From positions 71,223,574 through 71,287,573 of the forward strand of contig NC_085841.1 in assembly GCF_035594765.1 (NCBI RefSeq): 64,000 nucleotides of DNA, in the 5' to 3' direction. Below the pieces are notes generated by a model. It did not search any database. It worked only from the letters and a program-made list of their open reading frames with translations, and was not told where the DNA came from. This stretch comes from Anolis carolinensis. Taxonomy: Eukaryota. A program made the position numbers and the translations under genes. Each line of letters opens with the position of its first letter. Within the stretch, counting starts at the first letter, position 1. Shown piece after piece: positions 17,252-60,269 of this stretch.

Positions 17252-18208
17252 ATGGCAGAGGCATACTCCTTATCATTCCACACTGTTGCGGGTGCCCAAA
17301 ACACTGGGACTCAAATGGAGACTGGCTACCAGTTGCAAAAAACGATTATGATTGTATCAATTCCAATCTGCACATTAGGATTACTTGGTAATGCAGTTGT
17401 CGTCTGGCTTCTGTGGTGCTTCATCCCGAAAACTAATTTCACTGTGTATTTCCTCAATAAGGCAGTTGCTGATCTTGCTGTACTCATCTACTACATAACA
17501 GTTTTCATTTTATTTGTGAAGGAAGTTCCCATGAACCTGTTCAGTTTACATATCATGGAGCTGGCACATGGCTTTGGGTTCAATGCAAGCACTTATATCC
17601 TAACAGCTATCAGTGCTGAGAGGTTCCTCATGGCCTTTTCACCAACATGGTATAAGCTGAATCGGCCCACCCATCTCTCCGAAATCATGTGTGCCCTTTT
17701 ATGGAGCTTGTCCTGCCTGGTGACTGTGACGTTATATTTTGCCTGCTATCTGCAACTTGATCCATTACTCACTGAAGTTAATTCGATTTGTGAGCCTACA
17801 AAAATGGCCCGAGCAATTGTCAACCTCCTGGTGTTTCTCCCTATCATGGTCCTGTCCACATTGCTCCTTTTGGTCAGAATGTTGAATACACCGCAGGGAA
17901 GCGCTCCAGAAAAAATTGACATCACCATTGTGGCCACCGTTTTGCTATTTCTTCTCTTTGCTGCCTCAGTTAGGATCATTGATATTATAGTCCACTGGGT
18001 CCCCCAAATACACATATCTGTGGTCTTCCTAATATTTCATTTTCTCGATGCTATTGACAGCAGTGGGAACCCTTTTATATATTTCTGTGTTGGCTATACA
18101 AAGAATCAGGTTGACAGTGGCAGCCCCACCCAAACATTTCTTCAGAGGGCTTTCTTGGACGATGAAAACAGGTCAAGAAATGCAAGCTATGCCCCAAGAA
18201 GAAGATGA
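17252..18208 (+). CDS. Mas-related GPCR, copy 2, about 318 aa
   Basis: GLLGN, YFLNKAVADL, LTAISAERFL..P.WY..RPTHLS, SSGNPFIYF; acceptor TTGGCAG at 17214; AATAAA near 18276. Confidence 0.93.
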   Translation: MAEAYSLSFHTVAGAQNTGTQMETGYQLQKTIMIVSIPICTLGLLGNAVVVWLLWCFIPKTNFTVYFLNKAVADLAVLIYYITVFILFVKEVPMNLFSLHIMELAHGFGFNASTYILTAISAERFLMAFSPTWYKLNRPTHLSEIMCALLWSLSCLVTVTLYFACYLQLDPLLTEVNSICEPTKMARAIVNLLVFLPIMVLSTLLLLVRMLNTPQGSAPEKIDITIVATVLLFLLFAASVRIIDIIVHWVPQIHISVVFLIFHFLDAIDSSGNPFIYFCVGYTKNQVDSGSPTQTFLQRAFLDDENRSRNASYAPRRR

Positions 18209-18342
18209 AAGAGGATTTATACACAGATGGAAAAAGTACATACATGTGACTGTTAGTTGGCATTCCTGTCTTTTAAATAAACACATTGTAGATACTTTGT
18301 TGCTGTTCATTACTTCTAATTTATCTATCTAAACCACTATAC

Positions 18343-18472
18343 CAGGGGTCCCCAAACTAAGGCCCGGGGGCCGGATGCGGCCCATCGAAGCCATTTATCC
18401 GGCCCCTACAGCACAAGGGCAGAAGGGGGTTGGGCTAAATGGCCCAAGGGGTCTCTTCTTCTCTTACAACAC

Positions 18473-18503
<31 letters not shown>

Positions 18504-18625
18504 CATTATTATTAACATTGAGGCTGGGAGGCCATCTGTCAGGGTTGTTTTGCTTGTGCTTTGGATGCACAAAGGCAGAAGGGGGCTGGACTCAGTGGCC
18601 CAAGGGCTCTCTTCCAACCCTCTTT

Positions 18626-18667
<42 letters not shown>

Positions 18668-18840
18668 ATCAAGGCTGTATTTGTTCCCGTTTTGTTTGTT
18701 TTTTTACTTCAAAATGAGGCATGTGCAGAGTGCATAGGAATTTGTTCATAGTTTTTTAAAAAAAAAAACTCTAGCCCGGCCCTCCAACTGTCTGAGGGAC
18801 CGTGGACTGGCCCCCTGTTTAAAAAGTTTGGGGACCCCTG
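18343..18840. mobile_element. OC1-like hAT MITE with internal (TTA)n and (TTG)n
   Basis: TIR CAGGGGTCCCCAAACT; perfect TSD CACTATAC. Confidence 0.9.
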
Positions 18841-20249
18841 CACTATACCATCGTTTAGGTAGAGTTGTCTATCCAGACAAAGCAAATGTTGTTGGAGGTT
18901 GCAATATTCATAGCTGTCGTTCTTGGATTGTTAAAATATAATCAGACAATATTTTGGATGTCCTGGAATATTCAGTGGCAATTCCTGGCACCAGCAGCAA
19001 CATTTTATTTCTACCCAGAAGGTGTTGGGAGTTTTTTACACACACAGGACCATCGACGGGCGGGTGGCGGGCGAAGCAAGGGAGAGCAGGAGGGCGGCCG
19101 TGCGGACAGGTGGCTGGGCCTTCCGCCGCCGCTGCCTTGACAGCGCCCACACATGGTCTGCGCCACAAGCGACAGCTTAATTGGCCTTAATGTTGGACCG
19201 CCTCTGCTTCCTTTTTACTATGGATGGAAGGGTCAAAGAGGGAGCAATTGTTAGCAGAGAAGTGTCATTGCATTTATATATTTGGGTTTAAGATTACTGG
19301 TCCTTTAAAAAGAAGGCATGCCCATACTGGATCTGACAACATACAGAGACAATAGGTCTGGAAGGTATCAAATGTACTGAACAGATCTGAATGAAGACTG
19401 GCCATGTTTCCTACAATTATGGCTTCCTTCAGTCCCAACCCCCCCCCCCCAACCCCACCCCCAGCCATCAGCTTTTATAAGGATTTTTAAAAGTTATTAT
19501 TGTTTTTTTAATTGCTATTATTTATATCCCTCTTTTTCTCTCTAAAAAGAGACCTAAAGTGATGCTGTGAAAGAGCTTAGAGAGGGGAGGTGGGCAAAGA
19601 AAACAACTGACAGCCTCCAAAAGTAGTTAAAGGGGCTTTATGCTCACTTTGGGGGCAAGGAGGGAAGGGTGGCATGGCCATCCCACCTCCCTGGCCTGCC
19701 TAAGCCCCAGGAGCATAAGATGGTTGTGGGGACACCAATCTGGGATCACAGGTAGTGTGTCTGCTTGCACAGCCTAACATGAGGTAAATTGCATTAAAAA
19801 GGTGTACCATGTGTTATTTCACATTAGCCTGGGTTTGGACACCCCATGCTAATGTGATACCTACACTGCATTTTCTTACGGTGCAGATGGGCCTGGAATC
19901 TCAACAGCTTTGTGATAAGGAAGAACAAGAAAACAATGCTAATCATCATCAAGGAAAGTTCCAATTTGGGGGGGGGGGGGAGAGAGAAGTAGGGCAGCAG
20001 CAGCACCATGTGGAATCTCCATGGCGGGTCAGGAATCATCACTCCTCTCAGCACTCCCATTTTATGCAGACATTCCAGAAGGATACTATGGCTGTTGCTG
20101 AACAGGAAATGCTCAGAGAACCAAGAATCTTAACACTATCACACATAGAGATGATCTGTCTACTAGGCAGATCATGCCTGGTCCCACCCAGGGAGCCAGA
20201 GAGAAAACAGATCAATATTACTTTAAACTCATGCTGTGCATTCCCAAAC

Positions 20250-20330
20250 TGCCAATAACAGTGGCTGGGTGGTCAGAAGATTCTCATATTCCATTTGTTA
20301 CCTAGGAACACACGATCATTGTGAAGTCAA
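20250..20330 (+). promoter_or_regulatory. Conserved upstream module of GPCR copy 3
   Basis: GGTCA ending at 20275 and GTTACCTAGGAAC at 20297, same spacing as for copies 2 and 4. Confidence 0.6.
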
Positions 20331-21457
20331 GTGGTTCATACCTTTCTGATATGAAGGACAGCAGAATGACCAGATCCACTTGAAATGCAACTGAAGAGGA
20401 ATCATGACGGTTGTATTTAATCTTATACTGGATCTTAGTTTTATTCGCTTAAAGCTCATATTTAAGATTATATAATTTTGTTAACAAAAAACAAAGAAAA
20501 CACTTAAAGTAACCAGATACCATATGACTACATGTCTAATGAAGAAACAGGTTGGCACTTGCCAGAGTGATAACACAGTAGGCCCTTGGTGTCTACCAGG
20601 GCTGACCCCAGGGCCCCATGGATAGCAAATTCTGTGGATGTTCAAGGTCCATTTATACTATGGTATAGTGAAATGATATCGCTTATATAAAATGGCAAAA
20701 TCAAAATTTGCTTTGTCTACTTTGTTTGGAATATTTTAAGCCATGAAGGATTAAATCTGTGGACATAGAATCTGTAGAAAATAGTGGGAAGGAGACTTTT
20801 TCCCTTCCAAAGAAACATTTTCTCCAACTACTGAGTAGACCATTGCCTCTTCTGATGATTGGTGGCTGTGCAATTGAACGGCAGTGGAAGGAATAGAGAG
20901 AAATTACAGAAGATACGAACAGACCAGAACTCTGAATTAACTAGAGTCAAGTCTAGTGATTTATTTATTATTTATTTATTTACATCATTTCTATCCCGTC
21001 TTTCTCACCCGTAGGGACTCAAGGCGGCTTACTAGTCTGGCAAAAATTCAATGCCAATACAAACAACAATACAATAAAACATAAAACAGTTGAGTTGACT
21101 TGAGTGTTAGTTAGACTATGACTGTGAAAAATGATTCCCGAGTTCACAATCTTTTGTGGAGCCATGCGTCATTTTAATCCTCTTTTGAAAGAGGAAATGA
21201 ATAGAAGATAACAGCCTGTTTTAAAAGGTGGGGCTTCTCTTGGGTTTTTAAATGGCTTAAAATAACTCAAAGGGGGATAACTTTGGAAAGTTGTGCCCTT
21301 GCCTTCTACAAAGTATTTGTGGTCATTTTGCGGATATTTTTTTAAAGGAGAGCATACATGGATATAAGTGTGTAACCCTCAGTCTCCCAAGGGACCAATA
21401 TGGCACCCTCGCCTTCCCATTCCTGTTCTAAAACCCTAAAACACATATGTTCTAGAG

Positions 21458-21588
21458 CAGTGGTTCTCAAACTGTGGGTCCCCAGATGTTTTGGTCAACT
21501 CCCAGAAATCCTATCAGCTGGTAAACTGACTGGGATTTCTGGGAGTTGTAGGCCAAAACACCTGGGACCCGCAAGTTAAGAACCACTG
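21458..21588. mobile_element. hAT MITE
   Basis: TIR CAGTGGTTCT; TSD TTCTAGAG/ATCTAGAG. Confidence 0.85.
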
Positions 21589-21779
21589 ATCTAGAGAGAC
21601 AATTAATTCCAAGTCATTTTTTCCTAAGCAGCAGCTATGAGAGTGGGATGTTACAGCACAAATGTCTTTGCCTGACAGGTGGTCTTGGATTTTCTGTCTC
21701 TATTCCACAATACGATGTTATAATAGTAACACATTATGTTTGATTTTTGGCAGATTGAGAAGAACAATTGGACATTGTC

Positions 21780-22799
21780 ATGATGACAGACTCACCTGCT
21801 TTGTTTTCTGAGACTGCTGCTCTGATTAAAAAAAATTTCACACAACTCGAAACTTGGCCAAAGAAAGGCTATTTCCTGGGATCAAAGAAAAGCTATTTCC
21901 TAGAAACAATTGTCTTTGTATCTATCCCAATCTGCATTTGGGGATTCCTTGGGAATGGAATTACCCTCTGGATTCTCTGCACCAAGACAAAGAAAACTAG
22001 GTTCACAATTTATGTCATCAATTTGGTCATTGCGGATCTTATTGTGATCATCTACTACCTTACTGTTTTCATTTTATTTTTGGTATCAACTAATGTGGAT
22101 TTGTATTTTTCACGTGTAATGGAGAATTTTTATTTAATAAGCTACAATGCTAGTATCTATTTTTTTACTGCTATGAGTACTGAAAGGTTCCTCATGGTCT
22201 TTATGCCAGTCTGTTACTATCATCATCGACCAAAGCATATGTCAGTAATTGTGTCCGTCATTTTGTGGGCCTTGTCCTGCATAGTGTCACTTGTGGTATA
22301 TATTTCATGCCTCCCGAGATTCCTTGTATCTCATCATCAAAGTGGCCCCTCTTGTGATGGTGCAATTATTTTTAAAATTTTTGTCAATATCTTGATTTTC
22401 TTTCCCATCATGATATTTTGTACTCTGTCGCTTTTTATACGAATGCAGAGAAAAGCAAAGTTGAGAGATTCTGAGAAACTTGATGTCACCATCACAGCCA
22501 TCACCATTCTGTACCTTTCATTTGTTGTTTCAGTTAGAATTGTTGATGCCATAGCCCACTGGGAGCCAAGACTTGATGCACCAGTCCCATTTCTATTTAC
22601 TTTGTTATTCGATTCCATCAAGAGCACTGTCACCCCTCTTGTGTATGTCTGTGTTGGATGCTGTCATCAGTTTACGACTGTAGCACCTATTCATCAGTTC
22701 CTTGCGAGAGCTCTGGAATATAAAATAAAAGGGAGCAAAGATCAGGCAGCTAGCAAAAAACCTAGTTCCAGAGTAACTTGGGCCCCAGAAGTAAGATGA
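21780..22799 (+). CDS. Mas-related GPCR, copy 3, about 339 aa
   Basis: GFLGN, YVINLVIADL, TAMSTERFL..P..Y..RPKHMS, TPLVY; acceptor at 21753; AATAAA near 22846. Confidence 0.93.
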   Translation: MMTDSPALFSETAALIKKNFTQLETWPKKGYFLGSKKSYFLETIVFVSIPICIWGFLGNGITLWILCTKTKKTRFTIYVINLVIADLIVIIYYLTVFILFLVSTNVDLYFSRVMENFYLISYNASIYFFTAMSTERFLMVFMPVCYYHHRPKHMSVIVSVILWALSCIVSLVVYISCLPRFLVSHHQSGPSCDGAIIFKIFVNILIFFPIMIFCTLSLFIRMQRKAKLRDSEKLDVTITAITILYLSFVVSVRIVDAIAHWEPRLDAPVPFLFTLLFDSIKSTVTPLVYVCVGCCHQFTTVAPIHQFLARALEYKIKGSKDQAASKKPSSRVTWAPEVR

Positions 22800-24209
22800 A
22801 AAACACTCTGAACTACAAATACTGGCTAGCATTTTCCATTTCCAGAATAAAAAGTATTGCAGTTCATGTTATTAATCATTATTTCTAGGCTGCTTCATTC
22901 ACCTAAGCTCCTACATAAGATCAATTATAAATCCTTTTCAGGGCAATCATTATAGTAGAATGAGGTACTACTTTACAAATCTTGCAAATTTACTTTTAAG
23001 AAGAATAAATATAATAATATGCCAAAATTATATATAACTGAGCAAGGATAAGACCACAATTTTTTGGGAATGACAATGAAGTGACTTCCACAGCCAGTGC
23101 GTTCATTGCTGCTAAATTCTAAGAGATGTAATCTAAAAAGTAACGTTTCCAGATTTTGGGTAGGATGATGCTCTAGGTGCCAAAGTATTATTCTGCCACT
23201 GATCAGTTATGAATAGTTTATTACAAGTTTGTAGTCATTCTTTCTAAAATTAACTGCATAAACTCTATAGTTTTGTAAGATTAAATACAGATGAAAGGTG
23301 TGAGCATACTCAAAGGATAAAGGACAACTAGAAAGCAACCACAATAAGAATGACTACTTTGACATTGCTCATATTGCTTTGCTAACAATAAAAACGGACT
23401 TCAATCTGGCTATCTTTAAGTGTCTGCCTCCGTTGCAGATTTTATTTATTTTCTAAAATCTAATCAGGGACTAGCTCTCTCAGTAGATGGGCATAACTGT
23501 TATCCCTAGACTGTTTGTAATGTTGCAAGGCCTGAGAGAGAGAATGACAGAGGAAAGAAAGGAACAGAGAAGAAAAACCAGTTGCCTTGTGTCTCTGGCT
23601 GGATCTGCACTGCCATATAGTGCAGTTTCAGAATACAGATTAACTGCATTGAACTGGATTTTATGACAGTTTATATTTATATAATCAAGTTCAATACAAT
23701 TTAATCTGCATTACGTGAGTCTACACTGAACATAGTTAAAACTGCATTATATGGCAGTTTAGATGGGGCCTCTGATATCTTATCTGGATAGGTTTGGGTT
23801 TCTTTCAAAAGACCAGGCCTGCAGCTTGATGGTGCTCTTGGACCTAGCAATGGTTCTTGAAGGTTAGACGACTGGTGTGGCCAGGAGTGTTTTCATGGGA
23901 TTTCAGCTGCTGTTTTAAATGTACTACTTCCAAAGAAGATAGATTTGGCCATAGTGATCCACGCATTAATTGCCTTCCATCTTTCAAAAGAAGCATTCAC
24001 CTTCAGATGCATCCGACAGCCCTTTCGCACAACACAATGGCAGCAACATGATTTCATTTTAATGGCCATGGCTGTTTCGTTTGGAATCCTGTGATTGCTA
24101 GTTTCATGAAATTTTAGAATCCTCTTCCAGAAAGCCCCTATGCATCACTAAACTACAAATCCCTAGATCCACTGGATGAAGCCATGACAGTTGAAGTAGC
24201 ATCAAAGTG

Positions 24210-24355
24210 TTGTCGAAAGCTTTCATGGTCAGAATCACTGAGTTGCTGTGAGTTTTCCGGGCTGTATGGCTATGCTCCAGAGGCATTCTCTCCTGAATGT
24301 CAGGAGAGAATGCTTCTGAAACATGGCTATACAGTCCAGAAAACTCACAGGAACC
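24210..24355. mobile_element. Fold-back Penelope terminal fragment
   Basis: Inverted arms around about 24298; 13-bp flanking duplication TAGC(A/G)TCAAAGTG. Confidence 0.8.
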
Positions 24356-24787
24356 TAGCGTCAAAGTGCATTAATTGAATACTGTGAGAACTATACTGTG
24401 GACTAGGATTTTCATGGGATTTCCTGGGTCACACTGGCCCCTTCTACATTGCCATATAATCCAAATTATCAAAGCAGATAACCCACATCTGCTTTGAACT
24501 GGATTATATGGGTCAACACTGCCATATAATCCAGTTCAAGCGGATAATCTGGATCATTTTTTGTATTAATGGGGGTGGGAGGAATTCGTTGCTACATAAA
24601 GAATGCATAAAACGTGACAAGAAGCACCACAGATCATGTATTACATAGAGAAATGCATCAGTACAGAATTTATTTATATTAAATTGGCCTGGAGATGGGA
24701 GACATGGCAAGCAGACTCTCACGCCTTAGAAGACATTAGGGCATGAAAGAAAAGCGATATGCCTGTTCCAGAAGTTGACAAGGTTGC

Positions 24788-24818
<31 letters not shown>

Positions 24819-25714
24819 AGAAATCCCAGATTCTCCTAGCTAGTCCCTAGCTAGGGAAATTAGGGAGATAAAGTCCAAAAAAGTACCTTTTCCTAGCTCT
24901 GCAGCGGTCAGAAATGCTGGGGAGAAATTCTAGTCAACCGAATTATTTTGCATTTCTCCTAGCAGGAAAACCATCCCTTCTGATCTGATCCTGACTTCTG
25001 CTTTGAGTCTGGAGCAGTTTCCACATTACAGAATTATAGCAGTTTAACACCACATTAACTGCTATGGGTCAATGCAATAAAACGTTTGGATTTGTAGTTC
25101 TGTGAGATATTTATCCTTCTCTGGATATATCTGTATATCCTACTCTGGATATACAAGTCTCTGGAATCCATAGGATGGAGCCATAGGAGTTAAAAGCATG
25201 TCAAACTGCTATGAATTTACAATGTGGGTGGCCTGAACTACATCTTGCTTGGACCTTCCATTTACTCGCTGCATTTGCTCTTCACACTTGGCCTTCCTTG
25301 GATGCTAATTTGATCTTTGACATCATGCACAGACCAATATAGCATTTAAATGGAAATGAACCCTGGAAGGCGGGACTGTGAATTTGTTTATCTATTTACT
25401 GTATTTATATACTGCTTTTCTCGCCCCTGAGGGGACTCAAAGTGGTTTCCAACATACTAATGGCAAAATTCAATGCCGACATACATTTGAAAAACCAAAA
25501 CATAATATCAAGACAATAACATATAGCTATAAATTAAAACCATTAACCATATTAAAACATGAGGAATAAACAAACATTTAAAAATTAAGAAAAAAATTAA
25601 AACATCCAAGTATAAAATATTAAAATCACATAGTCCAAAATCGTAATCTGAAGCCATTGAAATTGTCAATTGCACTTATTCCCTATTCATTTCTTACACA
25701 ATGAATCTCATCAT

Positions 25715-25852
25715 AATCCAGCTAACAATTGCTGTGAGGTCATGAAGTTCTCAGATTCCCTTTGTTACATAGGAAACACACTATCATAGTGAAGGAACAC
25801 ATATCTTCAAAGAAGATAGTCCTGAGTGTAGAATACAGTTAACAAGGTAAGA
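25715..25852 (+). promoter_or_regulatory. Conserved upstream module and probable non-coding first exon of GPCR copy 4
   Basis: TGAGGTCA at 25735, GTTACATAGGAAAC at 25764, consensus donor AAG|GTAAGA at 25846. Confidence 0.65.
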
Positions 25853-28864: not shown

Positions 28865-29507
28865 TAAACCTAATTATAATTAGGATATATCTGTTATAAT
28901 AGTTGGGATGTAAGTTAGTCATGATTCACTTAGCTACACTGATTTAAAATGATCTCCCCTATATATGACTAAATCTGCATCCAAACCAATGTCTCATTCA
29001 TAAGGTAATCATGAGGAATTTTGAATTCAGTATATACTAATCACATTCATCTACACCCCTCCCCAATACAATTTACAAGTTAGATAAAGTAAAAAAAATA
29101 ACACCTGGAATTATTTACCTAAGATGGTATGCCTTTCTTAGATGAGACACTTCCAGAAGTAGAGTTATCTTTTTACTAAAAAAAAAAAAAAAGTATTGGG
29201 GGAGTAGTCTTAAGTGTGCCTTGGGGGCTTTAACCATAGGATGTCCACTTCTGCTTTAAATGGAAGTTGAAAGAATGTTCCGGTAGTGGTCATTCTGGCC
29301 CATCCAGCCAACAGAATATATGAATGCTAGGTTAGCCTTTCTTGCTCAAATGTTTGAGTTTAATGTTACTAAAGGACAGTCCCCACCTGATGGGTATCTG
29401 TTTTGAATATTTCTAATTTTTATTCCAACAGCTAAATGCCATAATAATGACAGATTATGTCTGTTTTTTACAGTTGGAGAATTACTGAACCCGTTGCTCG
29501 TGGCAAG

Positions 29508-30434
29508 ATGGTAAAGGCTGCTTTGTCTTTTCCGGTTCCTGATATGTTTAGACAATCTCAATATGACCTCTCTTGGCAAGAGAAAATCATGATTTCATGG
29601 ATGCCATTTGCAATCTTGGGATTTATAGGAAATGGAATTGTTACCTATTTTTTCTGGCACAGGCAAAAACGTTCTAGGTTTTTTCTGTATTTCCAGAATA
29701 TCACTATAGCTAATTTTTCAGTACTCATCTATGTATTTGTATATTTTCATAGGCTTTTTTTACGGTTAAGAATCAAGAACTTTTTTGAACACATTGTGCA
29801 GACACTGCAGTTATTGGGAAACAACACCAGATTCTATCTCTTAGCAGCCACTTGTGTTGAAAGATGGTTTCTTGTCTATCGCCCAGTGTGGGTTAAACAT
29901 CGGAGGCCACAGTACACATCAGCCGTGGTGGTTAGCATTTTATGGATTGTGGCCAGCATTACATCCATGGTGGATCATTTGGCCTGCTCTCCAGCATTCT
30001 TCATAACCACTTTTGAATATGAACTCTACTGCATGTCTTTTACTGTCATCAGGATAATTCTTGAGTTAGGACTTCTCATCGCCATTGTCTTTTGCTCTGC
30101 AGCCATTTTGAAGAGAAGTCTAACACAGTCAATGCCACCAGAAAGGCTTGATGTCACCATTTTAGCCACAGTCCTTCTGTATCTTACAACTGACACACCT
30201 GATAGAATTGCTTATGAGATTTCTATTTGGTTTGATGACATGGATATATTTGCGTTAATTTTATTTACTCAGTTATTTGACACCATCAACTGTGCTGTTA
30301 TTCCATTTATATTTTTCATTGTTGGATGTTGGAAGAAGCCCTCGGATGAGCCAGTCAGCCTGTTTCTTGAAAGAGCTCTGATGTTTGAAGAAAACAGGGT
30401 AGAAGGAACACCAGTACAAGAAGAGCAGGCCTGA
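29508..30434 (+). CDS. Mas-related GPCR, copy 4 (atypical motifs), about 308 aa
   Basis: GFIGN, YFQNITIANF, CVERWF..RP.W..RRPQY, IPFIFF; acceptor TTTTACAG at 29473; ORF intact. Confidence 0.9.
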   Translation: MVKAALSFPVPDMFRQSQYDLSWQEKIMISWMPFAILGFIGNGIVTYFFWHRQKRSRFFLYFQNITIANFSVLIYVFVYFHRLFLRLRIKNFFEHIVQTLQLLGNNTRFYLLAATCVERWFLVYRPVWVKHRRPQYTSAVVVSILWIVASITSMVDHLACSPAFFITTFEYELYCMSFTVIRIILELGLLIAIVFCSAAILKRSLTQSMPPERLDVTILATVLLYLTTDTPDRIAYEISIWFDDMDIFALILFTQLFDTINCAVIPFIFFIVGCWKKPSDEPVSLFLERALMFEENRVEGTPVQEEQA

Positions 30435-45400: not shown

Positions 45401-46129
45401 TGTGCAAATTTGAAATATTGTACACATAAATGGTGATACATCAGAGAAAGTAATTGGCAGCAGAAAGAGAAAGAAAGACAAAGTGATACAGAAGCAGAGA
45501 AGTTCATTCACCACCAGCCCTAATTCTGTCCATCTGAATGATTTTTCTTCTCAGCCAACGGCACTTCATAGGGAAAAGAGGGCACCAAATTTGAAGGAAT
45601 ACTGAACAAAACACCAAATAATTCAGGGTTTATTATCAGTTTCACAGTCTAGCATAGGCATGGGCAAACTTAGGCTCTCCAGGTGTTTTGGACTTCAACT
45701 CCCACAATTCCTAACAGCTGACTGGCTGTTTGGAATGGTGAGAGTTGAAGTACAAAACACTTGGTGGGCCGAAGTTTGCTGATGCCTGGTCTAGCAGTTG
45801 TTACCAGTTGAAATTTCGGACCATCAATGATTCCAATTCTATCCAAGAATCTAGTTAATGTGGCACTTTCCAAGAAGTTCCACTTTTTGTAATTGTGCTG
45901 CTGTTGCATTTATATCTCTCTGTTTCTAAAGTCTGGAACTTAAGATGACGGAAGTTAAAACACATATAACTAATATAATGTACAAAAATTAAAAACAGAC
46001 TCTTTCCCATCTTTGTGAATATTATACCACAAAACACATGCTCCTCTAGAAAGTTTCAACCTCCTCTTAAAACATGTTAATATCACAATAACAAAAAGTA
46101 TGTTTGATTTTGGCAGGTTGACAAAGATT

Positions 46130-47062
46130 ATGGAACATATGAACAGCACCATAGCGACAGAAGTTTCTTCTCTTCAGGATGAAAGGAAACCAGGCAAACC
46201 TGTTGATGTTCCACGTAGCTTACAAACAAGGATACTGTTCACATCTTCTCCAGTCTGCCTCTTCGGGCTGTTACTAAATTTACTCATTATATGGCTTTAC
46301 TGCTGTAAAATCAAAAAGACTAAATTAACTCTATATTTTCTTAATATGGCCATTGCTGATCTTATCATAATCTTCTTAAATGTTACCATTATTATTGCAT
46401 ATTTTACACCCCTAAATCCCAGCTTAAAGGTTCGACGGATATTGCAAATTCTGCATGTATGTGCATTTGATACCACCTTCTTTTTTAAGGCAACGATCTC
46501 TGTAGAACGGTACATCTTTCTTAAGTGGCCATTTTGGTATAATCACTACCGGCCCAACAATTTCTCTGTCATTATAAGTATTAGTTTATGGGGTTTGTCC
46601 TGTGTAGTATCATTTGTGACCTATTACGGCTGTTATCCAAGATTCGATGTCAGCGTCAACACACTTCTTAACAACTGCAGAGCTGCCAATGCAATTGAAA
46701 TAATCATTGAGTTGATCATTTTCCTTCCCAGCATGATCATCTGCACTTTTGCCCTTTGGATCAGAATGCAAACTCCTGTATCAAGACTGGATGTTTCCAT
46801 TGTGGGTTTGGTTCTTATATGTCTTATCATTAATGCCCCAGTTAGAATTACTCAAATCACTTCCTCTTGGGATTATAATGTAGATAGGTATGTGCTAGGC
46901 AAGATTTCTCTCTTACTAGACTCTGTCGACAGTGCTAGCAACCCTATCGTGTTCCTTATTGTTGGTTGTAAAAAGAACCAGAAGGCAATCCTGTTTCTTG
47001 AGACTGCTCTGGATGAAGGAAACACAACAGAGAAAACACAATCCAGCGAAGTATATGCCTGA
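46130..47062 (+). CDS. Mas-related GPCR, copy 5, about 310 aa
   Basis: YFLNMAIADL, TISVERYI..WPFWY..RPNNFS, NAPVR, SASNPIVF; acceptor at 46116; AATAAA near 47134. Confidence 0.93.
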   Translation: MEHMNSTIATEVSSLQDERKPGKPVDVPRSLQTRILFTSSPVCLFGLLLNLLIIWLYCCKIKKTKLTLYFLNMAIADLIIIFLNVTIIIAYFTPLNPSLKVRRILQILHVCAFDTTFFFKATISVERYIFLKWPFWYNHYRPNNFSVIISISLWGLSCVVSFVTYYGCYPRFDVSVNTLLNNCRAANAIEIIIELIIFLPSMIICTFALWIRMQTPVSRLDVSIVGLVLICLIINAPVRITQITSSWDYNVDRYVLGKISLLLDSVDSASNPIVFLIVGCKKNQKAILFLETALDEGNTTEKTQSSEVYA

Positions 47063-49982: not shown

Positions 49983-50028
<46 letters not shown>

Positions 50029-51501: not shown

Positions 51502-51543
<42 letters not shown>

Positions 51544-51751
51544 TCATTTATATCCCACTTTTCTCCTGTGGGTAGGATTCAAAGCAGCATAAAAAGTTTA
51601 AATCAATACAAATACATCGACACACAATACATAATCAACTAAACCTCATATACAAATATAAACATAACCCAATTTAACACATCATATAAAACAGTTAAAA
51701 CTTACAGCAGGTACTCATGCCTGGTATAAACTGTAATGGAATGTATGTTCA

Positions 51752-52383
51752 ATGTTGTGGACTCCACTTTGTAGCCCCATTTCTTAAGGTTGGCTCGTGG
51801 TGCCAGAGTGCAGTCTGTTCAGCTCCTTCCAAGTCACCCCGTCTTCTGTGTGCCCAGGAGGGACTTTCTAAGAACCTCAGTCAGTGGCTGAGTGGATGAG
51901 AAACTCCCCTCCTAAGCACACAGAAGACTGAACGAATGTTTTTAGGTTGAATGTTTTTATGTTGAATGTTTTTATATTGTGGAATGATATTTTAAATTGT
52001 AAGTCGCTCGGAGCACTCTGGTGAAAAGCGACTAATTAAGAAATAAAGTGAAGTGAAGTGAAGTGAACGATTTGGAAGGCGCTGAACAGATTGTGCTCTG
52101 GCACCACAAGATACAGAGCCAGCCTTAAGAAATGGGGCTACAAAGTGGAGTTCACGACATGCGAGTGCGGAAAAGAGCAAACCAAAGGCCACTGACTACA
52201 ATGCGGTCTGAACCTTGTCACATGCACAATGGAGGACCTTCTTACAGCGACACCAGAAGCATTCCAAGTGGCCAGCTTCTGGTCAAAGGAAATCTAGTAT
52301 AATGCCAAGTTTTTAACGATGTGTTCTTTTTAATACATTATAACTATACCCTCAATTTGCTGCTGACATGATAAATAAATAAA
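51752..52383 (+). mobile_element. Vingi-like LINE 3' fragment with inverted 5' duplication and nested tail insertion
   Basis: LKKWGYKVEFTTCECGKEQT; 3' end CTGACATGATAAATAAATAAA. Confidence 0.75.
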
Positions 52384-52904
52384 ATCAGCCACTGATTGAG
52401 GTTCCGGGTTTTATTCTGTCACTCTTGGACTCTCACTTGCTGGGATGTTCCTGCGATTATCTCTGTAGATCTTAGGAAACTGTTTCTTGATTTTAGTCAT
52501 TGGCATGCTGGCTGATATCCGAACAGACGGGTTGGAGATGTCAATGCCTTGGTCCTTTCACCGGAGAATCAAAGGCAGTTTTTTTCCCTCACATAATGGT
52601 CGCACCCCACCTTTTTTCATGGAAAAAAGGAGGAGAGTGTAACCATTATGCAACTATTATGGAAGTTTGTGGGTTTGCACGGGGTTATGAAGTGGCATCT
52701 CCTTAATGCTCCTGGGCATCCTCAAGTCCTTAAATCAGGACATATGGAACTTATGGCTATTGGAAACATCCCGGCTGTTAGAAATTGTAGGAATTAAAGT
52801 TCAAAGTACCTGGAGGGCTGAAGCTTGCCCATACCTGGTTTTTATACTTTTCAAAACAGGCTCCTTGGGATCAAAACTATGTCTCCCTCACCACAACAAA
52901 TTGT

Positions 52905-53405
52905 TTTTCTGGGTTGCTGTGAGGTTTCCAGGCTGTATGGCCATGTTCCAGAAGCATTATCTCCTGATGTTTCGCCCACATCTATGGCAGGCATCCTCAG
53001 AGGCTGTGAGGTCTGTTGGAAACTAGGCAAGTTGGGTTTATATATCTATGGAAAGTCCAGGGTGGGAGAAAGAACTCTTCTCTGTTTGAGGCAAGTGTGA
53101 ATGTTGCAATTGATCACCTTGATTAGCATTTAATGGCCTTGCAGATTTAAAGCCTGGCCGATTCCCTGCCTGCGGGAATCCTTTGTTGGGAGGTGTTAAC
53201 TGGCCCTGATTGTTTCCTGTCTGGAATCCCCCTGTTTTCTGAGTGTTGTTCTTTATTTACTGTCCTGATTTTAGAACTTTTTAAATACGGGTAGCCAGAT
53301 TTTGTTCATTTCATTGTTTCCTCTTTTCTGTTGAAGTTGTCATGCTTGTGGATTTCAGTGGCTTCCCTGTGTAGTCTGACATGGTGGTTGTGAGAGTGGT
53401 CCAAA
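52905..53405 (-). mobile_element. Penelope-like element 3' part (GIY-YIG C-terminus plus pLTR)
   Basis: Minus-strand LDHSHNHHVRLHREATEIHKH..NFNRKEE; hammerhead core at 52962-53003. Confidence 0.85.
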
Positions 53406-53913
53406 CTGTTTTTTGTTTCCTGAAATGAGCACCAATAGGGCCTGCCCCACGATGGAGCGTATCTATGGCGCGTGTTGGCCAGGTTTCCCGAGGCCTTCTA
53501 GGCATGAGAACTCAGAGAGCCGGCCCTTTAAGGCTGTCTCCTCAGAGAAGATCCAGCCAGCCGCCCTGAGAGGGAAGCTGGTCCTGGCCTGGAGAGAGAA
53601 GGACCACTTAGGCCTCTCATAAAAGGTGATGGGGAAAAGGGGGGCAAGGAAGGTCCCAGGCACCGCAGAATGGCTCCTGGCACTCCCACAGAGGCTGAGG
53701 GGTTGTTTGGGGAGGAAGAAAGTATTTTGAGTCCCGCCATATTGGTAGGAAGTGAGTTGGTGAGATGGGAAGTAGGCCACCTTGCCTTTGCTCAGCCTGG
53801 CTCGGGCAGCCAGGCCTTACAAGTTAAGTCCAGGCCTAGCTGAACCAAAACAGTGGCCCACAACATCAGGGTTCTGCCCTTTGATATGGTTGTTTAATTT
53901 TTTTCTGCTAGCC

Positions 53914-54123
53914 CAGGCATGGGCCAACTTGGGCCCTCCCTCCAGGTGTTGTGGACTTCAACTCCCACCATTCCTCACAGCCTCAGGCCCTTTCCTTTCC
54001 CCCCTCAGCCGCTTAAGCTTAAGCGGCTGAGGGGGGAAAGGAAAGGGCCTGAGGCTGTGAGGAATGGTGGGAGTTGAAGTCCACAACACCTGGGTGGGAA
54101 AAACCCAAGTTGGCCCATGCCTG
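53914..54123. mobile_element. Palindromic hAT MITE
   Basis: TIR CAGGCATGGGCCAACTTGGG; TSD (T/G)GCTAGCC; perfect palindrome 53942-54093. Confidence 0.9.
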
Positions 54124-54377
54124 GGCTAGCCCATAAGAAATCATGATAACCATAGCTTAAGAAACTAGAGCTGATGCAGTGTTATCCCTATGAATCAGCG
54201 CTCCAAATAACCACAGGAACAAGCCTAAAAGCCAAGACACCAATAATTGGTTATTTTTGTTGGGCTGTGTCCTTTAACATTTGTCATTCCCAGTTTTGTT
54301 TATTGCTGTTTTTATCTCTGATTTTCTAATCTTCTGGATTGCCTTTAGTTTGAGTTCTGAGAGGGAAAAAAAATACT

Positions 54378-54700
54378 GTAAAGGTAAAGGTTTCCCCTGA
54401 CATTAAGTCTAGTCATGTCTGACTTTGGGGATTGGTGCTCATCTCTATTTCTAAGCCGAAGAACCAGCGATGTCCATAGACACCTCCAAGGTCATGTGGC
54501 CGGCATGACTGCATGGAGCGCCGTTACCTTCCCGCCGGAGCGGTACCTATTGATCTACTCACATTTGCATGCTTTTGAACTGCTAGGTTGGCAGAAGCTG
54601 GGCTAAAAGCAGGCGCTCACCCCGCTCCCCGGATTCGAATCTGCCAACCTTTTGGTCAGCAAGTTCAACAGCTCAGTGGTTTAACTCACTGTGCCACTGG
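54378..54700 (-). mobile_element. Sauria SINE
   Basis: Same structure as 49267-49593. Confidence 0.9.
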
Positions 54701-54991
54701 GTTAAACACCAGATTAACAGACAAGATTCAATCAAATAATTAATACAATAGACCGGGCATCCTCAAACTGCGGCCCTCCAGCTGTTTGGACCTTCAACTC
54801 CCAGAAGCCCTCGCCAGCTTGTTCAGTGGTCAGAAATCTGGGAGTTGGAGGCCCAAACAGCTGGAGGGCCGCAGTTTGGGGGTGGCTCTCAGTTAAAGCA
54901 GCACTCATGGCAATTGGTAGATACTACAGTTGATGTAATATCTGTTTGCTTGAGTTATTATTAAAAATAGGTCTAATATTCAATTCCATGC

Positions 54992-55372
54992 TTTTTTTCG
55001 TGTCAGGAGCAACTTGAGAAACTGCAAGTCGCTTCTGGTGTGAGAGAATTGGCCATCTGCAAGGACGTTGCCCACAGGACACCTGGATGTTTTACTATCC
55101 TGTGACAGGCTTCTCTCATGTCCCCGCATGAGAAGCTGGAGTTGACAGACGGGAGCTCACCCTGCTCCCCGGATTCAAACCGCCTACCTTTCAGGCTGCA
55201 GTCCTGCTGGCATAAGAGTTTAACTCAGTGGTTCTCAACCTGTAGATCTCCAGGTGTTTTGGCCTACAACTCCCAGAAATTCCAGCCAGTATACCATCTG
55301 TTAGGATTTCTGGGAGTTGAAGTCCAAAACATCTGGAGACCCACAGGTTGAGAACCACTGGTTTAACCCATA
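54992..55372 (-). mobile_element. SINE with Vingi-type tail (AnolisSINE2-like), interrupted by a hAT MITE at 55226-55360
   Basis: Tail TCCTGACACGAAAAAAA on the minus strand; nested MITE TIR CAGTGGTTCTCAACCTGT with TSD GTTTAAC(T/C). Confidence 0.75.
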
Positions 55373-57046
55373 CCATAAACCAACTTCAGCTGAGACTCCT
55401 TTTCCCCATGATCATTTTTTTGAATTTCCCTTCTGAGGAGTAGATTTCTCTCACTTTCTGTTTTCTCACCCCCGTTTGTAACCATGAGTTGTTTGTAAAT
55501 TGGATGTTTGTAACTTGGGGACTGCCTGTATAAGTCTTATTTCAGGACTTAGTCACAGAAATTTCTTGATAGATGACCAGTACCAATTTTTGTTGCACAA
55601 AATGATACAGGCTTCATAATTACAAAAGCTTATTGGATCTAATTAGTTAAAATAGTAGATCTTGTATATCACTTAGAGTTGGGCAGAGGAAGGCAACATA
55701 ACTTACTTTATGTGAATTAATCAGGTTTTCAATCTTGTAATGTCCACAATAATTTTTACTTTTGCAAAATATGCTTGATCTCAAGATATCTTGAAACATT
55801 AACTAGTAGAAACTGTATTTTAATAGAAACATACAGAGACACTCAGATGTCCCATACAGTGGTGCATATCCAGCTATCTGATATGAGGGAACCAGTTATT
55901 TTTATTTTTATTTTTTTAGCCATGTGCCAAGGACTGGTACGATATTTATGACCACTGCCTACATTTTCTTTCCTTCCTAGAAATCCACCAGGAACTTGCA
56001 GTCAATGGCTCATGGACCAGCACTGGTACTTGGAACATCATTTTGAGTAGTAATGCCATACATATCTGGCAGTCCACATAGCTAAAGGGTACACTAAATG
56101 TTTATTTTAAAAATGTTAGTAGGAAACAGATTATTTGTATCTAACATGATATATCTTCATATTTCTTGGAGGAAATCTAACGCTTGAACTGTTAAGAAAC
56201 TGTGTAAGCATTTTCAGTTCATCTGTAATAATTTTCATTTCAGCAGTTGTGCACAAGCAAGCAATCTGAGACAATAAGTGTGGATCTTTTCAACAAAAGT
56301 ATGAAGCATTTGGTGGACATGCTCTAATGCTCATCCTCATCCTATTCTTCAGAAAAATCCTCGTTCTCATAATAGAAGTTTTTAAGACAGGTAAGATATT
56401 CCCAGTACAACAAATGTCCAGTTGCAACTATCATTTTTTTTCTTTTTTTATTGTTGTTTTGTCATTTTATCCCACTCCCACCCTCCCCTCCTTGTACATA
56501 CACTTTATACTATCATAATACCGGTAATATTTCAAGAAAAAAACCAATAAAAAACTTAACATAAACAAGAATAAAATATATTGTGCATTCTAAGAAATAA
56601 AAGGCTATGTTATACATTAAAAATAATAGCTTAAATGAATGTATCTTAAGCTTCTGGCAAATATGTATGGTACAATCAAATGGATTTGGCAATTTCACAT
56701 TTACTTTATTTATAAGTTTTAACAGGATATGTGTAAGCAAATAAAAGTTTTAAAATGGATCAAAATTTCTTTTATCAGAATGTATATTTGTTTTTGTTAG
56801 GTGATCTTCTAAAAACTGTTCTATGTCAGATACGTTACTTCACTGTAACCATGACCCATTATATCAAGACAAAGAGGAATAAATTTCGTTTTATTGTACA
56901 TATTGGACATTTTTATTTTTCTATTATTAATATATCTGAATATATGTATATATTATTAAAATGTATGGATTTGTAACAAGCAGATAATAGTTTGTAATTT
57001 TGCTACTGAATTCCATATAACCAAAATGTACCTGTCTAGATATGTA

Positions 57047-58250
57047 ATTACTTACTTAGGCAATCCCTCGTTGTCCGAGTATAATGGCCTTCCAAGTGTA
57101 GTGTCCTGGCGGTGGATATATAGGTGACTGTAGTGAGGACATCGGTTTCCAGGTGGAAGGCGGTCCCAATCAGGGTTGGCTTGACATGCTTTCCTCTTGG
57201 CATGCGCAATAACCAGGAGAAATCGTTCATAGGAGTTGGAGAAGGCTGGAGAAGGGTTTGGAAGGGGAAGAGAGAAGAGCACTATAAAAGGTACAATGTA
57301 CATGGGGAAATTAGTAGTGTTATTATATCAGCTTCTGCTGGTAGTTTCTAGAGGTTAACCAGTACTCACAATCCAGGTGAACGTAGCTAGCTTTATTGCT
57401 GCTATACACATGAGAAAGAAAATAACACTATTAATTTTGCCATGTACCTTCAGTCCCTTTTATAGTGCTCTTCTCTCCTCCCCTTCCAGACATTTCCTCA
57501 GCCTTCTCCAACTCCTGGGAACAATTTTGCTTCCTCACAGGAGTGCTCTCCTCCTCCAGGTTCGTTTGTTAACTCTGACCTTGGTTTAGATATGTTGGCT
57601 GGGGCAGGAGTTAAATGCTTATTCTTTCAAACTTTGAATCATGTCCTGGCACTCCCTTTCTCCCTCCATTCCTGCCTCTTCAAATTCCACAGCACTGCTG
57701 GTCACAGCTGACCTCCATCCAGAGCGCTCAAGAGCCAGGGCTTCCCAGTTCTCGGTGTCTATGCCACAGTTTTTAAGGTTAGCTTTAAACCCATCTTTAA
57801 ATCTCTTTTCCTGTCCACCAACATTCCATTTTCAATTCTTGAGTTGGGAATACAGTAACTGTGATCAGACATTTGGACAACGTGGCCAGTCCAGCGGAGT
57901 TGATGGCGTAGGATCATCGCTTTAATGCTAGTGATCTCTGCTTCTTCCAGCACGCTGACATCGGTCCGCCTGTCTTCCCAAGAGATTTGCAGGATTTTTT
58001 GGAATCGTTTCAGTTGAGTGTGACATCTGTAGACAGTCCCTGTTTTGCAGGCATATAACAGGGTTGAGAGGACAATAGCTTTATAAACAAGCCCCTTGGT
58101 ATCTCTCCGGATGTCCCAATCTGCAAACACTCTCTGCTTCATTCGGAGAAATGCTGCATTCACAGAGCTAAGCCGGTGTTGTATTTTCAGTGTCAATGTT
58201 GACTTTTGTGGAGAGGTGGCTGCCAAGGTAGCAGAAATAGTCAACATTTT
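57047..58250 (-). mobile_element. RTE-clade LINE 3' fragment interrupted by an inverted-repeat insert
   Basis: ORF 57759..58247: VYKAIVLSTLLYAC, KILQISWEDR, QLRWTGHV; (AAGT)n tail at 57047. Confidence 0.85.
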
Positions 58251-58300
58251 CTAACATATGTAATGCATAGGTGTGAAAATACATACATACATATTCACAA

Positions 58301-59213
58301 CTAGCGTATATACCCTGGGTTTGCATATGCTTGGTGGCTGTTTCTTACCTTCTTTTCTTTCCCTCATATACTTTGTCCCTCTCTTGTTTCTTACCTTTCC
58401 TCACTTTTGCTCATACACCATCACCTCTCTTCTTTCTTTCCATTCTCTGCTTTCCTTTCTCTTCCCTTGTTTTTCTTCTTCTCTCACTTTTGTCGCATTT
58501 ATTGTTCTTTCCTGCCTTCCTTCCTCTCAAATCTTTTCCCATTTTTTCTCTTTCCTCCTCCTCCCTTCTTTTTATCTTTTCTCCCTCGGATTCTGTTTTC
58601 TTTTCTCTTTCCTTCATTTTCTTTCTTCCTTCACTTCTTTTTACCTTTCCTCCTTCCTTCTTATTTTTTTCTTTCCTATTTTCTAACTTTTCCGATTTTT
58701 CCTTCCTTCCTTCCTCATTCTTTTTCTTTCTCCCCCACCTCTATTTCTTTTCTTGTCTCTTTCTTTCTTCTTTTCTTACTGACTTCCTTTCCCTCATACA
58801 CCTTTCCTACTTTTCTTACTTTCTTCCCCTTCTGTCTCCCTTTTCATGTCTGCCATCTGGCTGTTTTCTCCCTTCTCTACCTTGCTTCCGTGTTTGCTTG
58901 GCCCTTTGAAAAGGCCTCCCTCACAATGTCTCCATGGTAATGCTCTGGCCCTCCAAGTGGCTCGTAGTGTGTCCTTACTGACTCTCTAGCACACTTTCTT
59001 TTCTTACTTCTCTCTCTAAGGTAGCCTATCTATACATTGTATTAGTTTTGGTGGCCCTGGCCCCAAAAGGGGCAAATTTTTTATTATCTTAGGTTGGAAA
59101 ATCAAGGCTATATGTACCAAGTTTGGTCCAGATCCATCAAGCCATGTGGGAACCTTTGTGGTGCAAACCAACAAATATACATACGTACACATTTTTATTT
59201 ATATTTATGTAGA
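58301..59213 (-). mobile_element. Helitron-like element carrying a roughly 650-bp polypyrimidine tract
   Basis: CTAG at 58301, TC-TACATAAATATAAA 5' end on the minus strand, CCAAGTTTGG block as in the 11 kb Helitrons; hairpin unclear. Confidence 0.5.
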
Positions 59214-59375
59214 ACTTAGTAATGCCTTGTTGTGTTTGATTTTGGCAGGTTCAGAAGATTTACTGGGCACATGAACAATCTCATGCTGGCACAGATAAGA
59301 TACATATTTCCCATCATTTGTTGATGCTGTGAACAAAAATGACGCAGATGTGGGGCATCCTGCATTTCTAAAGCA

Positions 59376-60269
59376 ATGATAATTGTAGCTATTCCAATCT
59401 GCATTGTGGGATTAGTTGGGAATGCATTAGTTTTCTACTTTCTTTCCTTTAAGATCAAGAAGACAAAGTTCACTATGTATATACTGAATATTACTGTCGG
59501 TGATACTCTTGTTCTGGTCTATCAATATATATATTTCATGCTATTTTTGCAACCAATTCAACTTAGTGGACCCATCTCACATTTTCTAGAGTTAATGTAT
59601 GTTTTTGGAGACAACTCTAGCTTCTTTGCATTAACAATTGTTTGTCTTGAAAGGTGTTTCTCAGTCTTTCCCCCTATCATCCGTCGATTTAAACGTCCAA
59701 AGCATCTTGCAGTTTATATTTCTATTGCATTGTGGATCTTCTCTGGCCTGGTATCCATAATTGAATATTATGCATGCAGACCAAGATTCTATGCATATCT
59801 GGAGGAAGATAGTCACCACTGCTATGTTCAAACGATAGTCAAAATTGTCATTGGGTACGCAATTTTCATTCCCCTCATGGTCTTTTCCACTCTGGCCATT
59901 TTTATCAGAATGCTACAAAAAAGACTAGAAAGCATTCCTGCGGTGTTCGATTTTACCATCATAGCTGTAGTTATTCTTTTTCTTGTATTTCAAGCTTCAA
60001 TTAGAATTTTCAGTACTCTAGAATACTGGTATGATTCAATAGGCCTACCTCTCTTTACAATATCTGTCTTATTTGATACTATATCAAGCAGCATCAACCC
60101 TTTTTTATATTTTTTCATGGGATATTTCACTTACGGAAAACGTTATCCACTCGAAGTTCTTCTTCGGACTGCTTTGCAGGAGGAAAGCAATACGATAAAT
60201 AGCACGGTAAATAACACGGTAAATAACACGGAAAATAGCATGGAAAATAGCACAGAAAATAGCACGTAA
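59376..60269 (+). CDS. Mas-related GPCR, copy 6 (297 aa; N-terminus disrupted, possible incipient pseudogene)
   Basis: GLVGN, YILNITVGD, CLERCF..PP..RPKHLA, SSSINPFLYF; acceptor at 59248; upstream in-frame ATG 59271 is separated by two TGA codons. Confidence 0.85.
   Translation: MIIVAIPICIVGLVGNALVFYFLSFKIKKTKFTMYILNITVGDTLVLVYQYIYFMLFLQPIQLSGPISHFLELMYVFGDNSSFFALTIVCLERCFSVFPPIIRRFKRPKHLAVYISIALWIFSGLVSIIEYYACRPRFYAYLEEDSHHCYVQTIVKIVIGYAIFIPLMVFSTLAIFIRMLQKRLESIPAVFDFTIIAVVILFLVFQASIRIFSTLEYWYDSIGLPLFTISVLFDTISSSINPFLYFFMGYFTYGKRYPLEVLLRTALQEESNTINSTVNNTVNNTENSMENSTENST
60198..60269 (+). repeat. Coding 12-bp tandem repeat, 6 units
   Basis: Consensus AATAGCACGGAA encodes NSTV NNTV NNTE NSME NSTE NST*. 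Confidence 0.95.

Follow-up and report, generated by a model that had tools for sequence, protein, structure and literature searches.

Asp6.34 and Asp7.42 mark a squamate-restricted subfamily of Mas-like receptors in a tandem array of Anolis carolinensis

Introduction

MAS1 and the MRGPRs (Mas-related G protein-coupled receptors) are drug targets with an unusual mode of activation, in which ligands are bound at shallow depth and the Trp toggle is missing. High basal activity is characteristic of them, and the MRGPRs form a fast-evolving family. The present study concerns six receptor genes arranged in tandem in Anolis carolinensis, in a stretch of 64,000 nucleotides (NCBI RefSeq assembly GCF_035594765.1, contig NC_085841.1, positions 71,223,574 to 71,287,573 of the forward strand). 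This whole stretch is called the window, and all coordinates are counted from its first letter. Five of the genes (copies 2-6) belong to a Mas-like subfamily with Asp at generic position 6.34, near the cytoplasmic end of transmembrane helix (TM) 6, and an acidic residue at 7.42, within the core.

In the available MAS1 structures, the floor of the ligand pocket is formed by residues 6.55, 7.39, 2.57, and 2.60, and ligands lie 12-15 Å above 6.48. The cryo-EM study of MAS1 assigns M244 to 6.51, F237 to 6.44, and L266 to 7.39 (PMC13187490); R245, Y227, S269, and the DRY region are not discussed in that paper. In inactive rhodopsin, R3.50 contacts both E6.30 and T6.34, and in the mu-opioid receptor, which is devoid of E6.30, the TM3-TM6 lock consists of the R3.50-T6.34 bond (PMC3343417). 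Mutations that activate receptors constitutively also recur at position 6.34 (PMC4372616). The corresponding residues of MAS1 are S6.30 and Y6.34.

The names carried by the genes of this subfamily are automatic (“proto-oncogene Mas-like” or “MRGPRH-like”). A literature search returned no paper on the subfamily or its signature, and searches for position 6.34 of the MRGPRX receptors and for another paper on the MAS1 structure yielded nothing useful. A “cluster of reptile genes”, perhaps a new subtype, is mentioned in passing in the literature and may correspond to the present receptors.

Sequence collection and phylogenetic analysis

Likely ATG codons were taken as the starts of copies 2-4 in place of the GTG/TTG starts of their open reading frames (ORFs), which are an artefact of the ORF program. 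Residue frequencies were surveyed in 282 proteins placed on one hidden Markov model (HMM) alignment; these were gathered in two word-index searches and one exhaustive HMM search. The word-index protein searches, which used queries from a single clade, recovered only 15-18 members of the subfamily. Because the claim that the subfamily is limited to squamates depends on its absence elsewhere, a subfamily profile was also run exhaustively against 1.84 billion proteins, and the best 150 representatives from its 4266 hits were taken. The maximum-likelihood (ML) tree was calculated from 93 sequences after removal of the three trait columns (6.34, 6.52, and 7.42), with CWxP-type receptors as the outgroup.

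The receptor array

The plus strand of the window holds six intact, intronless, single-exon ORFs of class-A seven-transmembrane (7TM) type in tandem. The ORFs and their diagnostic residues are as follows.

Copy 1: 12658-13707, plus strand; member of the squamate MAS group, used as comparator; Y6.34 at 13420-13422, R6.52 at 13474-13476, H7.42 at 13552-13554; P6.50 and N7.45.
Copy 2: 17198-18208, plus strand; 7TM ORF, likely ATG at 17252; D6.34 at 17918-17920, R6.52 at 17972-17974, D7.42 at 18047-18049; S6.50 and D7.45.
Copy 3: 21768-22799, plus strand; 7TM ORF, likely ATG at 21780; D6.34 at 22482-22484, R6.52 at 22536-22538, D7.42 at 22611-22613; S6.50 and K7.45.
Copy 4: 29457-30434, plus strand; 7TM ORF, likely ATG at 29508; D6.34 at 30150-30152, R6.52 at 30204-30206, D7.42 at 30279-30281; also N2.50, R3.39, D6.48, D6.51, and F7.53.
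Copy 5: 46100-47062, plus strand; 7TM ORF; D6.34 at 46790-46792, R6.52 at 46844-46846, D7.42 at 46919-46921; P6.50, D7.45, and F7.53.
Copy 6: 59376-60269, plus strand; 7TM ORF that begins straight at TM1; D6.34 at 59949-59951, R6.52 at 60003-60005, D7.42 at 60075-60077; S6.50.

The window contains no runs of N, and tblastn (E < 1e-3) detected no further copies or pseudogene fragments in it. Copy 1 is 100% identical to an A. carolinensis UniRef protein and 83% identical to an A. sagrei protein annotated “proto-oncogene Mas-like”. The other five copies are 26-34% identical to copy 1, and copy 4 has an A. sagrei orthologue at 77% identity. A. sagrei supplies the closest orthologues of the copies other than copy 1, and together with the copy 1 match this identifies the genome as that of the green anole. 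All six match Pfam 7tm_1, copy 4 with 19.8 bits, under the gathering threshold of 30.5 bits; no NCBIfam model covers these proteins.

The motifs quoted in a preliminary description of this DNA are all present. In copies 2-6 an Asp stands eight residues ahead of the TM7 Pro (FLDAI, LFDSI, LFDTI, LLDSV, and LFDTI), and copy 1 has His there. An Arg is found in TM6 of all six copies (PFR, SVR, SVR, PDR, PVR, and SIR). Where TM6 of copy 1 starts with RLY, copies 2-6 have KID, KLD, RLD, RLD, and VFD, and three of them (copies 2, 3, and 6) carry Ser at 6.50. The generic numbering, originally counted by eye, was correct: it agrees with the published numbering of human MAS1, to which the anole residues align without gaps. 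On the basis of the numbering in PMC13187490, human Y227 is 6.34, P243 is 6.50, R245 is 6.52, and S269 is 7.42. The spacing from 6.34 to 6.52 (18 residues) and from 7.42 to P7.50 (eight residues) is the same in the six copies and MAS1.

Comparison with described receptors

The copies are class-A receptors of the MAS/MRGPR family. A six-copy profile searched against the PDB matched MAS1 best (E = 1e-70), followed by MRGPRX1 (2e-55), MRGPRX4 (1e-50), MRGPRD (5e-49), and MRGPRX2 (2e-48); MRGPRE was matched as well, and the first hit beyond the MAS/MRGPR family was C3aR (7e-29). An AlphaFold2 (AF2) model of copy 3 (predicted local distance difference test score 86.6, predicted TM-score 0.84) has seven helices and helix 8, with TM6 at residues 233-261 and TM7 at 268-294. 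It superposed best on MAS1 (9jlc), then on MRGPRX1, X2, and D, and the Foldseek order was that of the profile search. Family hallmarks are evident: the TM3 Cys3.25 of the canonical disulfide to extracellular loop 2 is missing (Y, L, S, E, R, and S in copies 1-6), as is the W6.48 toggle (L in copy 1; A, V, D, N, and Q in copies 2-6). A candidate Cys pair is formed by C4.64 at the end of TM4, present in all six copies, and C5.33 at the start of TM5, present in copies 2-6; both are invariant in the 41-member clade described below. Copy 1 has Tyr at 5.33, where MAS1 and the other five copies carry the second Cys of this TM4-TM5 pair.

MAS1, the best match in both sequence and structure, resembles copies 2-6 in its single coding exon, the ERx of TM3, the substitution of a small residue for W6.48, Arg6.52, the C4.64/C5.33 pair, and the lack of Cys3.25. 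It differs from them in having Y6.34, S/N/H7.42, N7.45, and P6.50, whereas copies 2-6 have D6.34, D7.42, K/D/N/S7.45, and often S6.50, and are placed in a separate clade that is sister to squamate MAS. MRGPRH of rodents and marsupials and the sauropsid “MRGPRH-like” proteins belong to the same family and share Lys/Arg6.52, but they retain Y6.34, S7.42, and N7.45 as in MAS1. Several subfamily members are automatically annotated as “MRGPRH-like”; MRGPRH, however, falls outside the grouping of squamate MAS and the D6.34 clade in the tree and has no acid at 6.34 or 7.42. MRGPRX1, X2, X4, MRGPRD, and MRGPRE, receptors of itch and mast cells with solved structures, share the family hallmarks and the fold of the copy 3 model (TM-scores of 0.77-0.85, normalised to target length). 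They differ from copies 2-6 in Gly/Ser/Asn6.52, Y6.34, and Ser/Ala7.42, and are more distant than MAS1 in both sequence (E from 1e-40 to 1e-55) and tree.

Distribution of the signature residues

In the survey, D6.34 was found in 45 non-redundant proteins. An acid at 7.42 accompanies it in 40 of these (89%; 37 with Asp and three with Glu), and residue 6.52 is Arg or Lys in 39. Among the 234 other relatives (MAS1, MRGPRH, and other MRGPRs), Asp or Glu was seen in none at either 6.34 or 7.42. Tyr6.34 occurs in 174 of the 234 and is the ancestral state. Two further residues have been remodelled in the D6.34 proteins: N7.45 is kept in five of the 45 vs. 217 of the 234 (a loss in 89%), and P6.50 in 15 of the 45 vs. 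224 of the 234 (a loss in 67%). Trp6.48 was present in one of 45 subfamily members and D6.48 in 11; N2.50 was present in eight of 40.

The distribution of a basic residue at 6.52 is different. Arg or Lys is found there in 135 of the 234 relatives outside the D6.34 group, including mammalian MAS1 (PMR; R245 in human), rodent MRGPRH (PMK), and Mas-like proteins of amphibians, crocodiles, and birds. R6.52 was rejected as a piece of the derived signature on these grounds; it is ancestral, inherited from a common ancestor with MAS1 and MRGPRH. The proposal that three residues, D6.34, R6.52, and D7.42, define the subfamily therefore survives for the two Asp residues, which are confined to one squamate clade, and fails for the Arg. 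The residue that recurs in a characterised receptor of the family, human MAS1, is R6.52, and neither D6.34 nor D7.42 does so. The signature is better described by D6.34, an acidic residue at 7.42, the loss of N7.45, and the frequent loss of P6.50, set on an ancestral R6.52 background. What would be new is the D6.34/D7.42 subfamily and its signature; R6.52 is shared with ordinary MAS1.

Phylogeny, orthology, and constraint

Every D6.34 protein with a named source organism is from a lizard or a snake. The lizards comprise geckos (Eublepharis, Paroedura, and Heteronotia), Tiliqua, Hemicordylus, Salvator, lacertids, Rhineura, Varanus, Elgaria, and iguanians; the snakes include Python, vipers, colubrids, and elapids. 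The next-best representatives, which do not have D6.34, include caecilian and salamander Mas-like proteins, a gecko MRGPRD-like protein, and shrew MAS1. In the ML tree, the 41 rows with D6.34 formed a single clade (support 100/99). Its sister is a 12-member squamate MAS group that contains copy 1 (99/91), and the next branch outward is a Mas-like protein from kiwi (100/99). The subfamily is thus monophyletic and, among the proteins surveyed, squamate-only.

Copy 1 itself groups with squamate MAS/MAS1 proteins (100/99) and shows every feature of the MAS1 orthologue group (Y6.34, P6.50, R/K6.52, an uncharged residue at 7.42, N7.45, and the placement in the tree). Its H7.42 is peculiar, as the residue is Asn in other squamate MAS proteins and Ser in mammalian MAS1. 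Copies 2-6 depart from that group in D6.34, D7.42, a residue other than Asn at 7.45 (copy 4 excepted), and, in three cases, S6.50; all five have D6.34, the 7.42 acid, and a position inside the D6.34 clade. Within the clade, copies 2, 3, and 6 fall into orthology groups of their own, and copies 4 and 5 share a broader one. The paralogues are old, because every orthology group spans lizards and snakes. D6.34, R6.52, and D7.42 occur together with D7.45 in every one of the copy 2 orthologues (A. sagrei, Phrynosoma, Pogona, Vipera, and Pseudonaja). The copy 3 group has 13 members from lizards and snakes, with K7.45 in all 13. The nearest relatives of copy 5 are from Varanus and Laticauda.

The 41 subfamily rows have a mean pairwise identity of 36% and a minimum of 20%. 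In nine of 278 well-filled columns the residue is invariant: G1.46, N1.50, a TM2 Tyr, R3.50, W4.50, C4.64, C5.33, D6.34, and a Gly that follows TM7. The conservation of D6.34 thus exceeds that of P7.50 (95%) and E3.49 (93%). The acid at 7.42 is absent from five members; two of these, in which the NPxxY motif is wrecked as well, resemble decaying genes. Copies 1, 2, and 3 follow one another in A. sagrei as they do in A. carolinensis, and the ORFs are intact. Between the two species, the ratio of nonsynonymous to synonymous substitution rates (dN/dS) was 0.63 for copy 1, 0.33 for copy 2, and 0.85 for copy 3, with dS of about 0.15-0.17. The substitutions in copy 3 spare D235, R253, D278, and K281. 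Copies 2-6 represent a genuine variant of the MAS/MRGPR family, specific to its lineage and under strong constraint, and the pattern of the signature exceeds plain shared descent.

The cytoplasmic end of TM6

D6.34 of copy 3 (D235) lies two residues inside the TM6 helix on the cytoplasmic side in the AF2 model. R3.50 is invariant across the subfamily. The replacement of Tyr6.34 by Asp is accompanied by a change from K5.62 to R5.62, which was found in 34 of 40 subfamily rows vs. none of 26 MAS/MRGPRH rows and is the sole other cytoplasmic change that tracks the D6.34 clade. Since 6.34 contacts R3.50 in inactive receptors and is a hot spot of constitutively activating mutations, an acidic lock of D6.34 on R3.50, as the preliminary description had proposed, is a reasonable inference by analogy. 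Functional analogues, in which a TM6 residue holds R3.50, are the classical E6.30-R3.50 ionic lock of rhodopsin and aminergic receptors and, in opioid receptors, the T6.34-R3.50 “3-6 lock”. The subfamily would differ from the classical case in that its acid occupies 6.34 and not 6.30, and a lock residue is otherwise missing from the family.

The buried core

Residues 6.52 and 7.42 lie equally deep, both of them three residues, or about one turn, below the floor of a MAS1-type pocket, so a contact between R6.52 and D7.42 is geometrically plausible. Natural variation nevertheless opposes an obligate Arg-Asp pair, the form in which the contact had been put forward. Five members keep the 7.42 acid with Gln or Asn at 6.52; they include four snake orthologues of copy 3 with Q6.52 and D7.42, all of which have K7.45, and a Laticauda member with N6.52 and E7.42. 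Conversely, an Erythrolamprus member has R6.52 with G7.42, four of the five members that have lost the 7.42 acid still carry Arg or Lys at 6.52, and MAS1 retains R6.52 with Ser, Asn, or His at 7.42. D7.42 was for this reason read as part of a variable buried charged network.

In the copy-4 type, N2.50 replaces D2.50, an Arg (3.39) is located within the usual sodium pocket, and D6.48, D6.51, and F7.53 are present. The core of this type appears unusually charged, even for the D6.34 subfamily.

The upstream block, the N-termini, and neighboring elements

A conserved DNA block with a consensus near TGTTTGATTTTGGCAGGTTGAGAA and an extent of about 45 nt was found just 5' of the likely start codon in copies 2-6 and is absent ahead of copy 1. 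Its positions are as follows.

Upstream block of copy 2: 17199-17222.
Upstream block of copy 3: 21738-21761.
Upstream block of copy 4: 29458-29481.
Upstream block of copy 5: 46101-46124.
Upstream block of copy 6: 59233-59256.

The same block precedes the A. sagrei orthologues of copies 2 and 3 (at 4839 and 9959 on that locus). Its conservation far exceeds that of the coding bodies, yet it does not code consistently: GTG takes the place of ATG in copies 2 and 6, a frameshift occurs in copy 3, and stops follow it in copy 6. With its T-rich tract and the CAG|G next to it, the block may represent a splice acceptor plus 5' untranslated region, possibly with shared leader exons.

Copy 6 has no extracellular N-terminus; a remnant of the ancestral one is present upstream (59232-59375, within 59142-59420) and has two in-frame stops. 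The orthologues in Elgaria, Crotalus, and Protobothrops likewise begin at TM1 (MI-I/L-IA-I/L-P). The idea that copy 6 is a recent pseudogene was rejected, as the Elgaria and viper orthologues also start at TM1, and the truncation looks old and tolerated given that these annotated proteins share it. The extracellular N-terminus of copy 3 (21780-21900) has a KKN-x-TQLETWPKKGYF-like stretch that is conserved from geckos to snakes, with three differences in 35 residues vs. A. sagrei; the remaining protein is 25% different. This stretch could be a functional, possibly tethered, element.

Two transposon-derived ORFs are located upstream of the array (871-2199, minus strand, and 7280-7990, plus strand). 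One has a weak reverse-transcriptase match (RVT_1, below threshold) and is probably a retroelement fragment. The other encodes an aspartyl protease of retroviral type and, after it, the beginning of a reverse transcriptase, and is a fragment of a long-terminal-repeat retrotransposon.

Discussion

The explanation that best accommodates the observations, and to which we give somewhat more credence than doubt, is that of a squamate-only Mas-like subfamily in which a D6.34 lock is combined with a charged network around D7.42. The subfamily would have arisen by tandem duplication beside a MAS-type gene, now represented by copy 1, and at least five orthology groups would have separated before lizards and snakes diversified. 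By replacing the Tyr that ancestrally stood at the cytoplasmic end of TM6, D6.34 would provide an acidic partner for R3.50, and possibly also for the co-derived R5.62. The resulting ionic lock would have no counterpart in MAS1 or the MRGPRs; it would be expected to keep TM6 closed and to reduce ligand-independent (basal) signalling. One helical turn under the MAS1-type pocket floor and level with R6.52, D7.42 would take part in a buried charged network in which R6.52 is a plausible yet dispensable partner. This network would replace the usual arrangement of N7.45, sodium pocket, and Pro kink, and its composition would differ by paralogue: K7.45 in the copy 3 group, D7.45 in the copy 2 group and copy 5, and N2.50/R3.39/D6.48 in the copy-4 type. 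Three points weigh against this explanation. D7.42 and R6.52 each appear to be retained when the other is lost, so an obligatory pair is not indicated. The co-occurrence of D6.34 and D7.42 is no statistical evidence of coupling, because both arose on one branch. Finally, the genes evolve fast, with dN/dS of 0.33 in copy 2 and 0.85 in copy 3, so that no single copy is guaranteed to be functional.

The single origin of both Asp residues on the stem branch, in a family that evolves fast, could also mean that the paralogues simply received them from their common ancestor and that they serve no special function. This is already disfavoured and is held to be very improbable: at pairwise identities of 20-50%, D6.34 is present in 45 of 45 proteins from geckos, skinks, lacertids, anguimorphs, iguanians, and snakes, it is fixed while P7.50, E3.49, and D2.50 vary, and two of the five proteins without the 7.42 acid also have a destroyed NPxxY and look to be decaying. 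That D6.34 is as invariant as R3.50 would suit any essential cytoplasmic role, among them a role in transducer coupling, i.e. an active-state contact to the C-terminal helix of G-alpha, to a G protein-coupled receptor kinase, or to arrestin, instead of an inactive-state lock. In class-A complexes the G-protein cavity is lined by residues 6.32-6.37, where TM6 ends on the cytoplasmic side, which is compatible with such a contact, and the helix-8 consensus of the subfamily is also unlike that of MAS1. Published mutagenesis and structures, on the other hand, make 6.34 an inactive-state contact of R3.50, and the coupling role is regarded as rather unlikely.

For the core, the main competitor of the charged network is a counter-ion site, in which D7.42 and other core or pocket acids would serve a ligand or ion of positive charge (an amine, the basic side chain of a peptide, Na+, or H+) and D7.42 would not be a structural salt-bridge partner of R6.52. 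The persistence of the 7.42 acid with Gln or Asn at 6.52 (five sequences) is consistent with this, as are the copy-2 and copy-5 types, which set D2.50, D7.42, and D7.45 against one Arg. The outer pocket has acids as well, namely Glu/Asp3.29 in the copy-2, -3, and -6 groups and Asp/Glu at 6.55 or 4.60, and MRGPRX2 and MRGPRX1 bind cationic ligands via acidic pocket residues, which furnishes a precedent. However, the ligands of MAS1 and the MRGPRX receptors lie 12-18 Å above 6.48, short of the depth of 7.42, and in the copy 3 group K7.45, one turn under D7.42 on the same helix face, could neutralise it. A counter-ion site is thus a possibility to be taken seriously, although a doubtful one; the outer-pocket acids at 3.29, 4.60, and 6.55 would fit cationic ligands equally under a charged network. 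A more far-reaching proposal, for which we see a slim chance, is that the whole class-A activation core has been rewired into a salt-bridge ladder plus the D6.34 lock, with switching by breakage of ion pairs. The ladder may comprise R6.52-D7.42, K7.45-D2.50 or D7.45, and R3.39/N2.50/D6.48 (in the copy-4 type), and may stand in for the missing toggle as well as for N7.45, the Na+ pocket, and the kink at P6.50. The lock would engage R3.50 and/or R5.62, and the triggers would perhaps be squamate-specific cations, protons, or amine-type cues.

The array belongs to an uncharacterised, fast-evolving, squamate-restricted receptor cluster that could be sensory or immune in function. In this natural subfamily of 45 proteins, an acid opposite R3.50 was kept throughout lizard and snake history while 7.42, 7.45, and 6.50 were remodelled. 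The subfamily is therefore a ready comparative test of how MAS/MRGPR receptors are held off and switched on.

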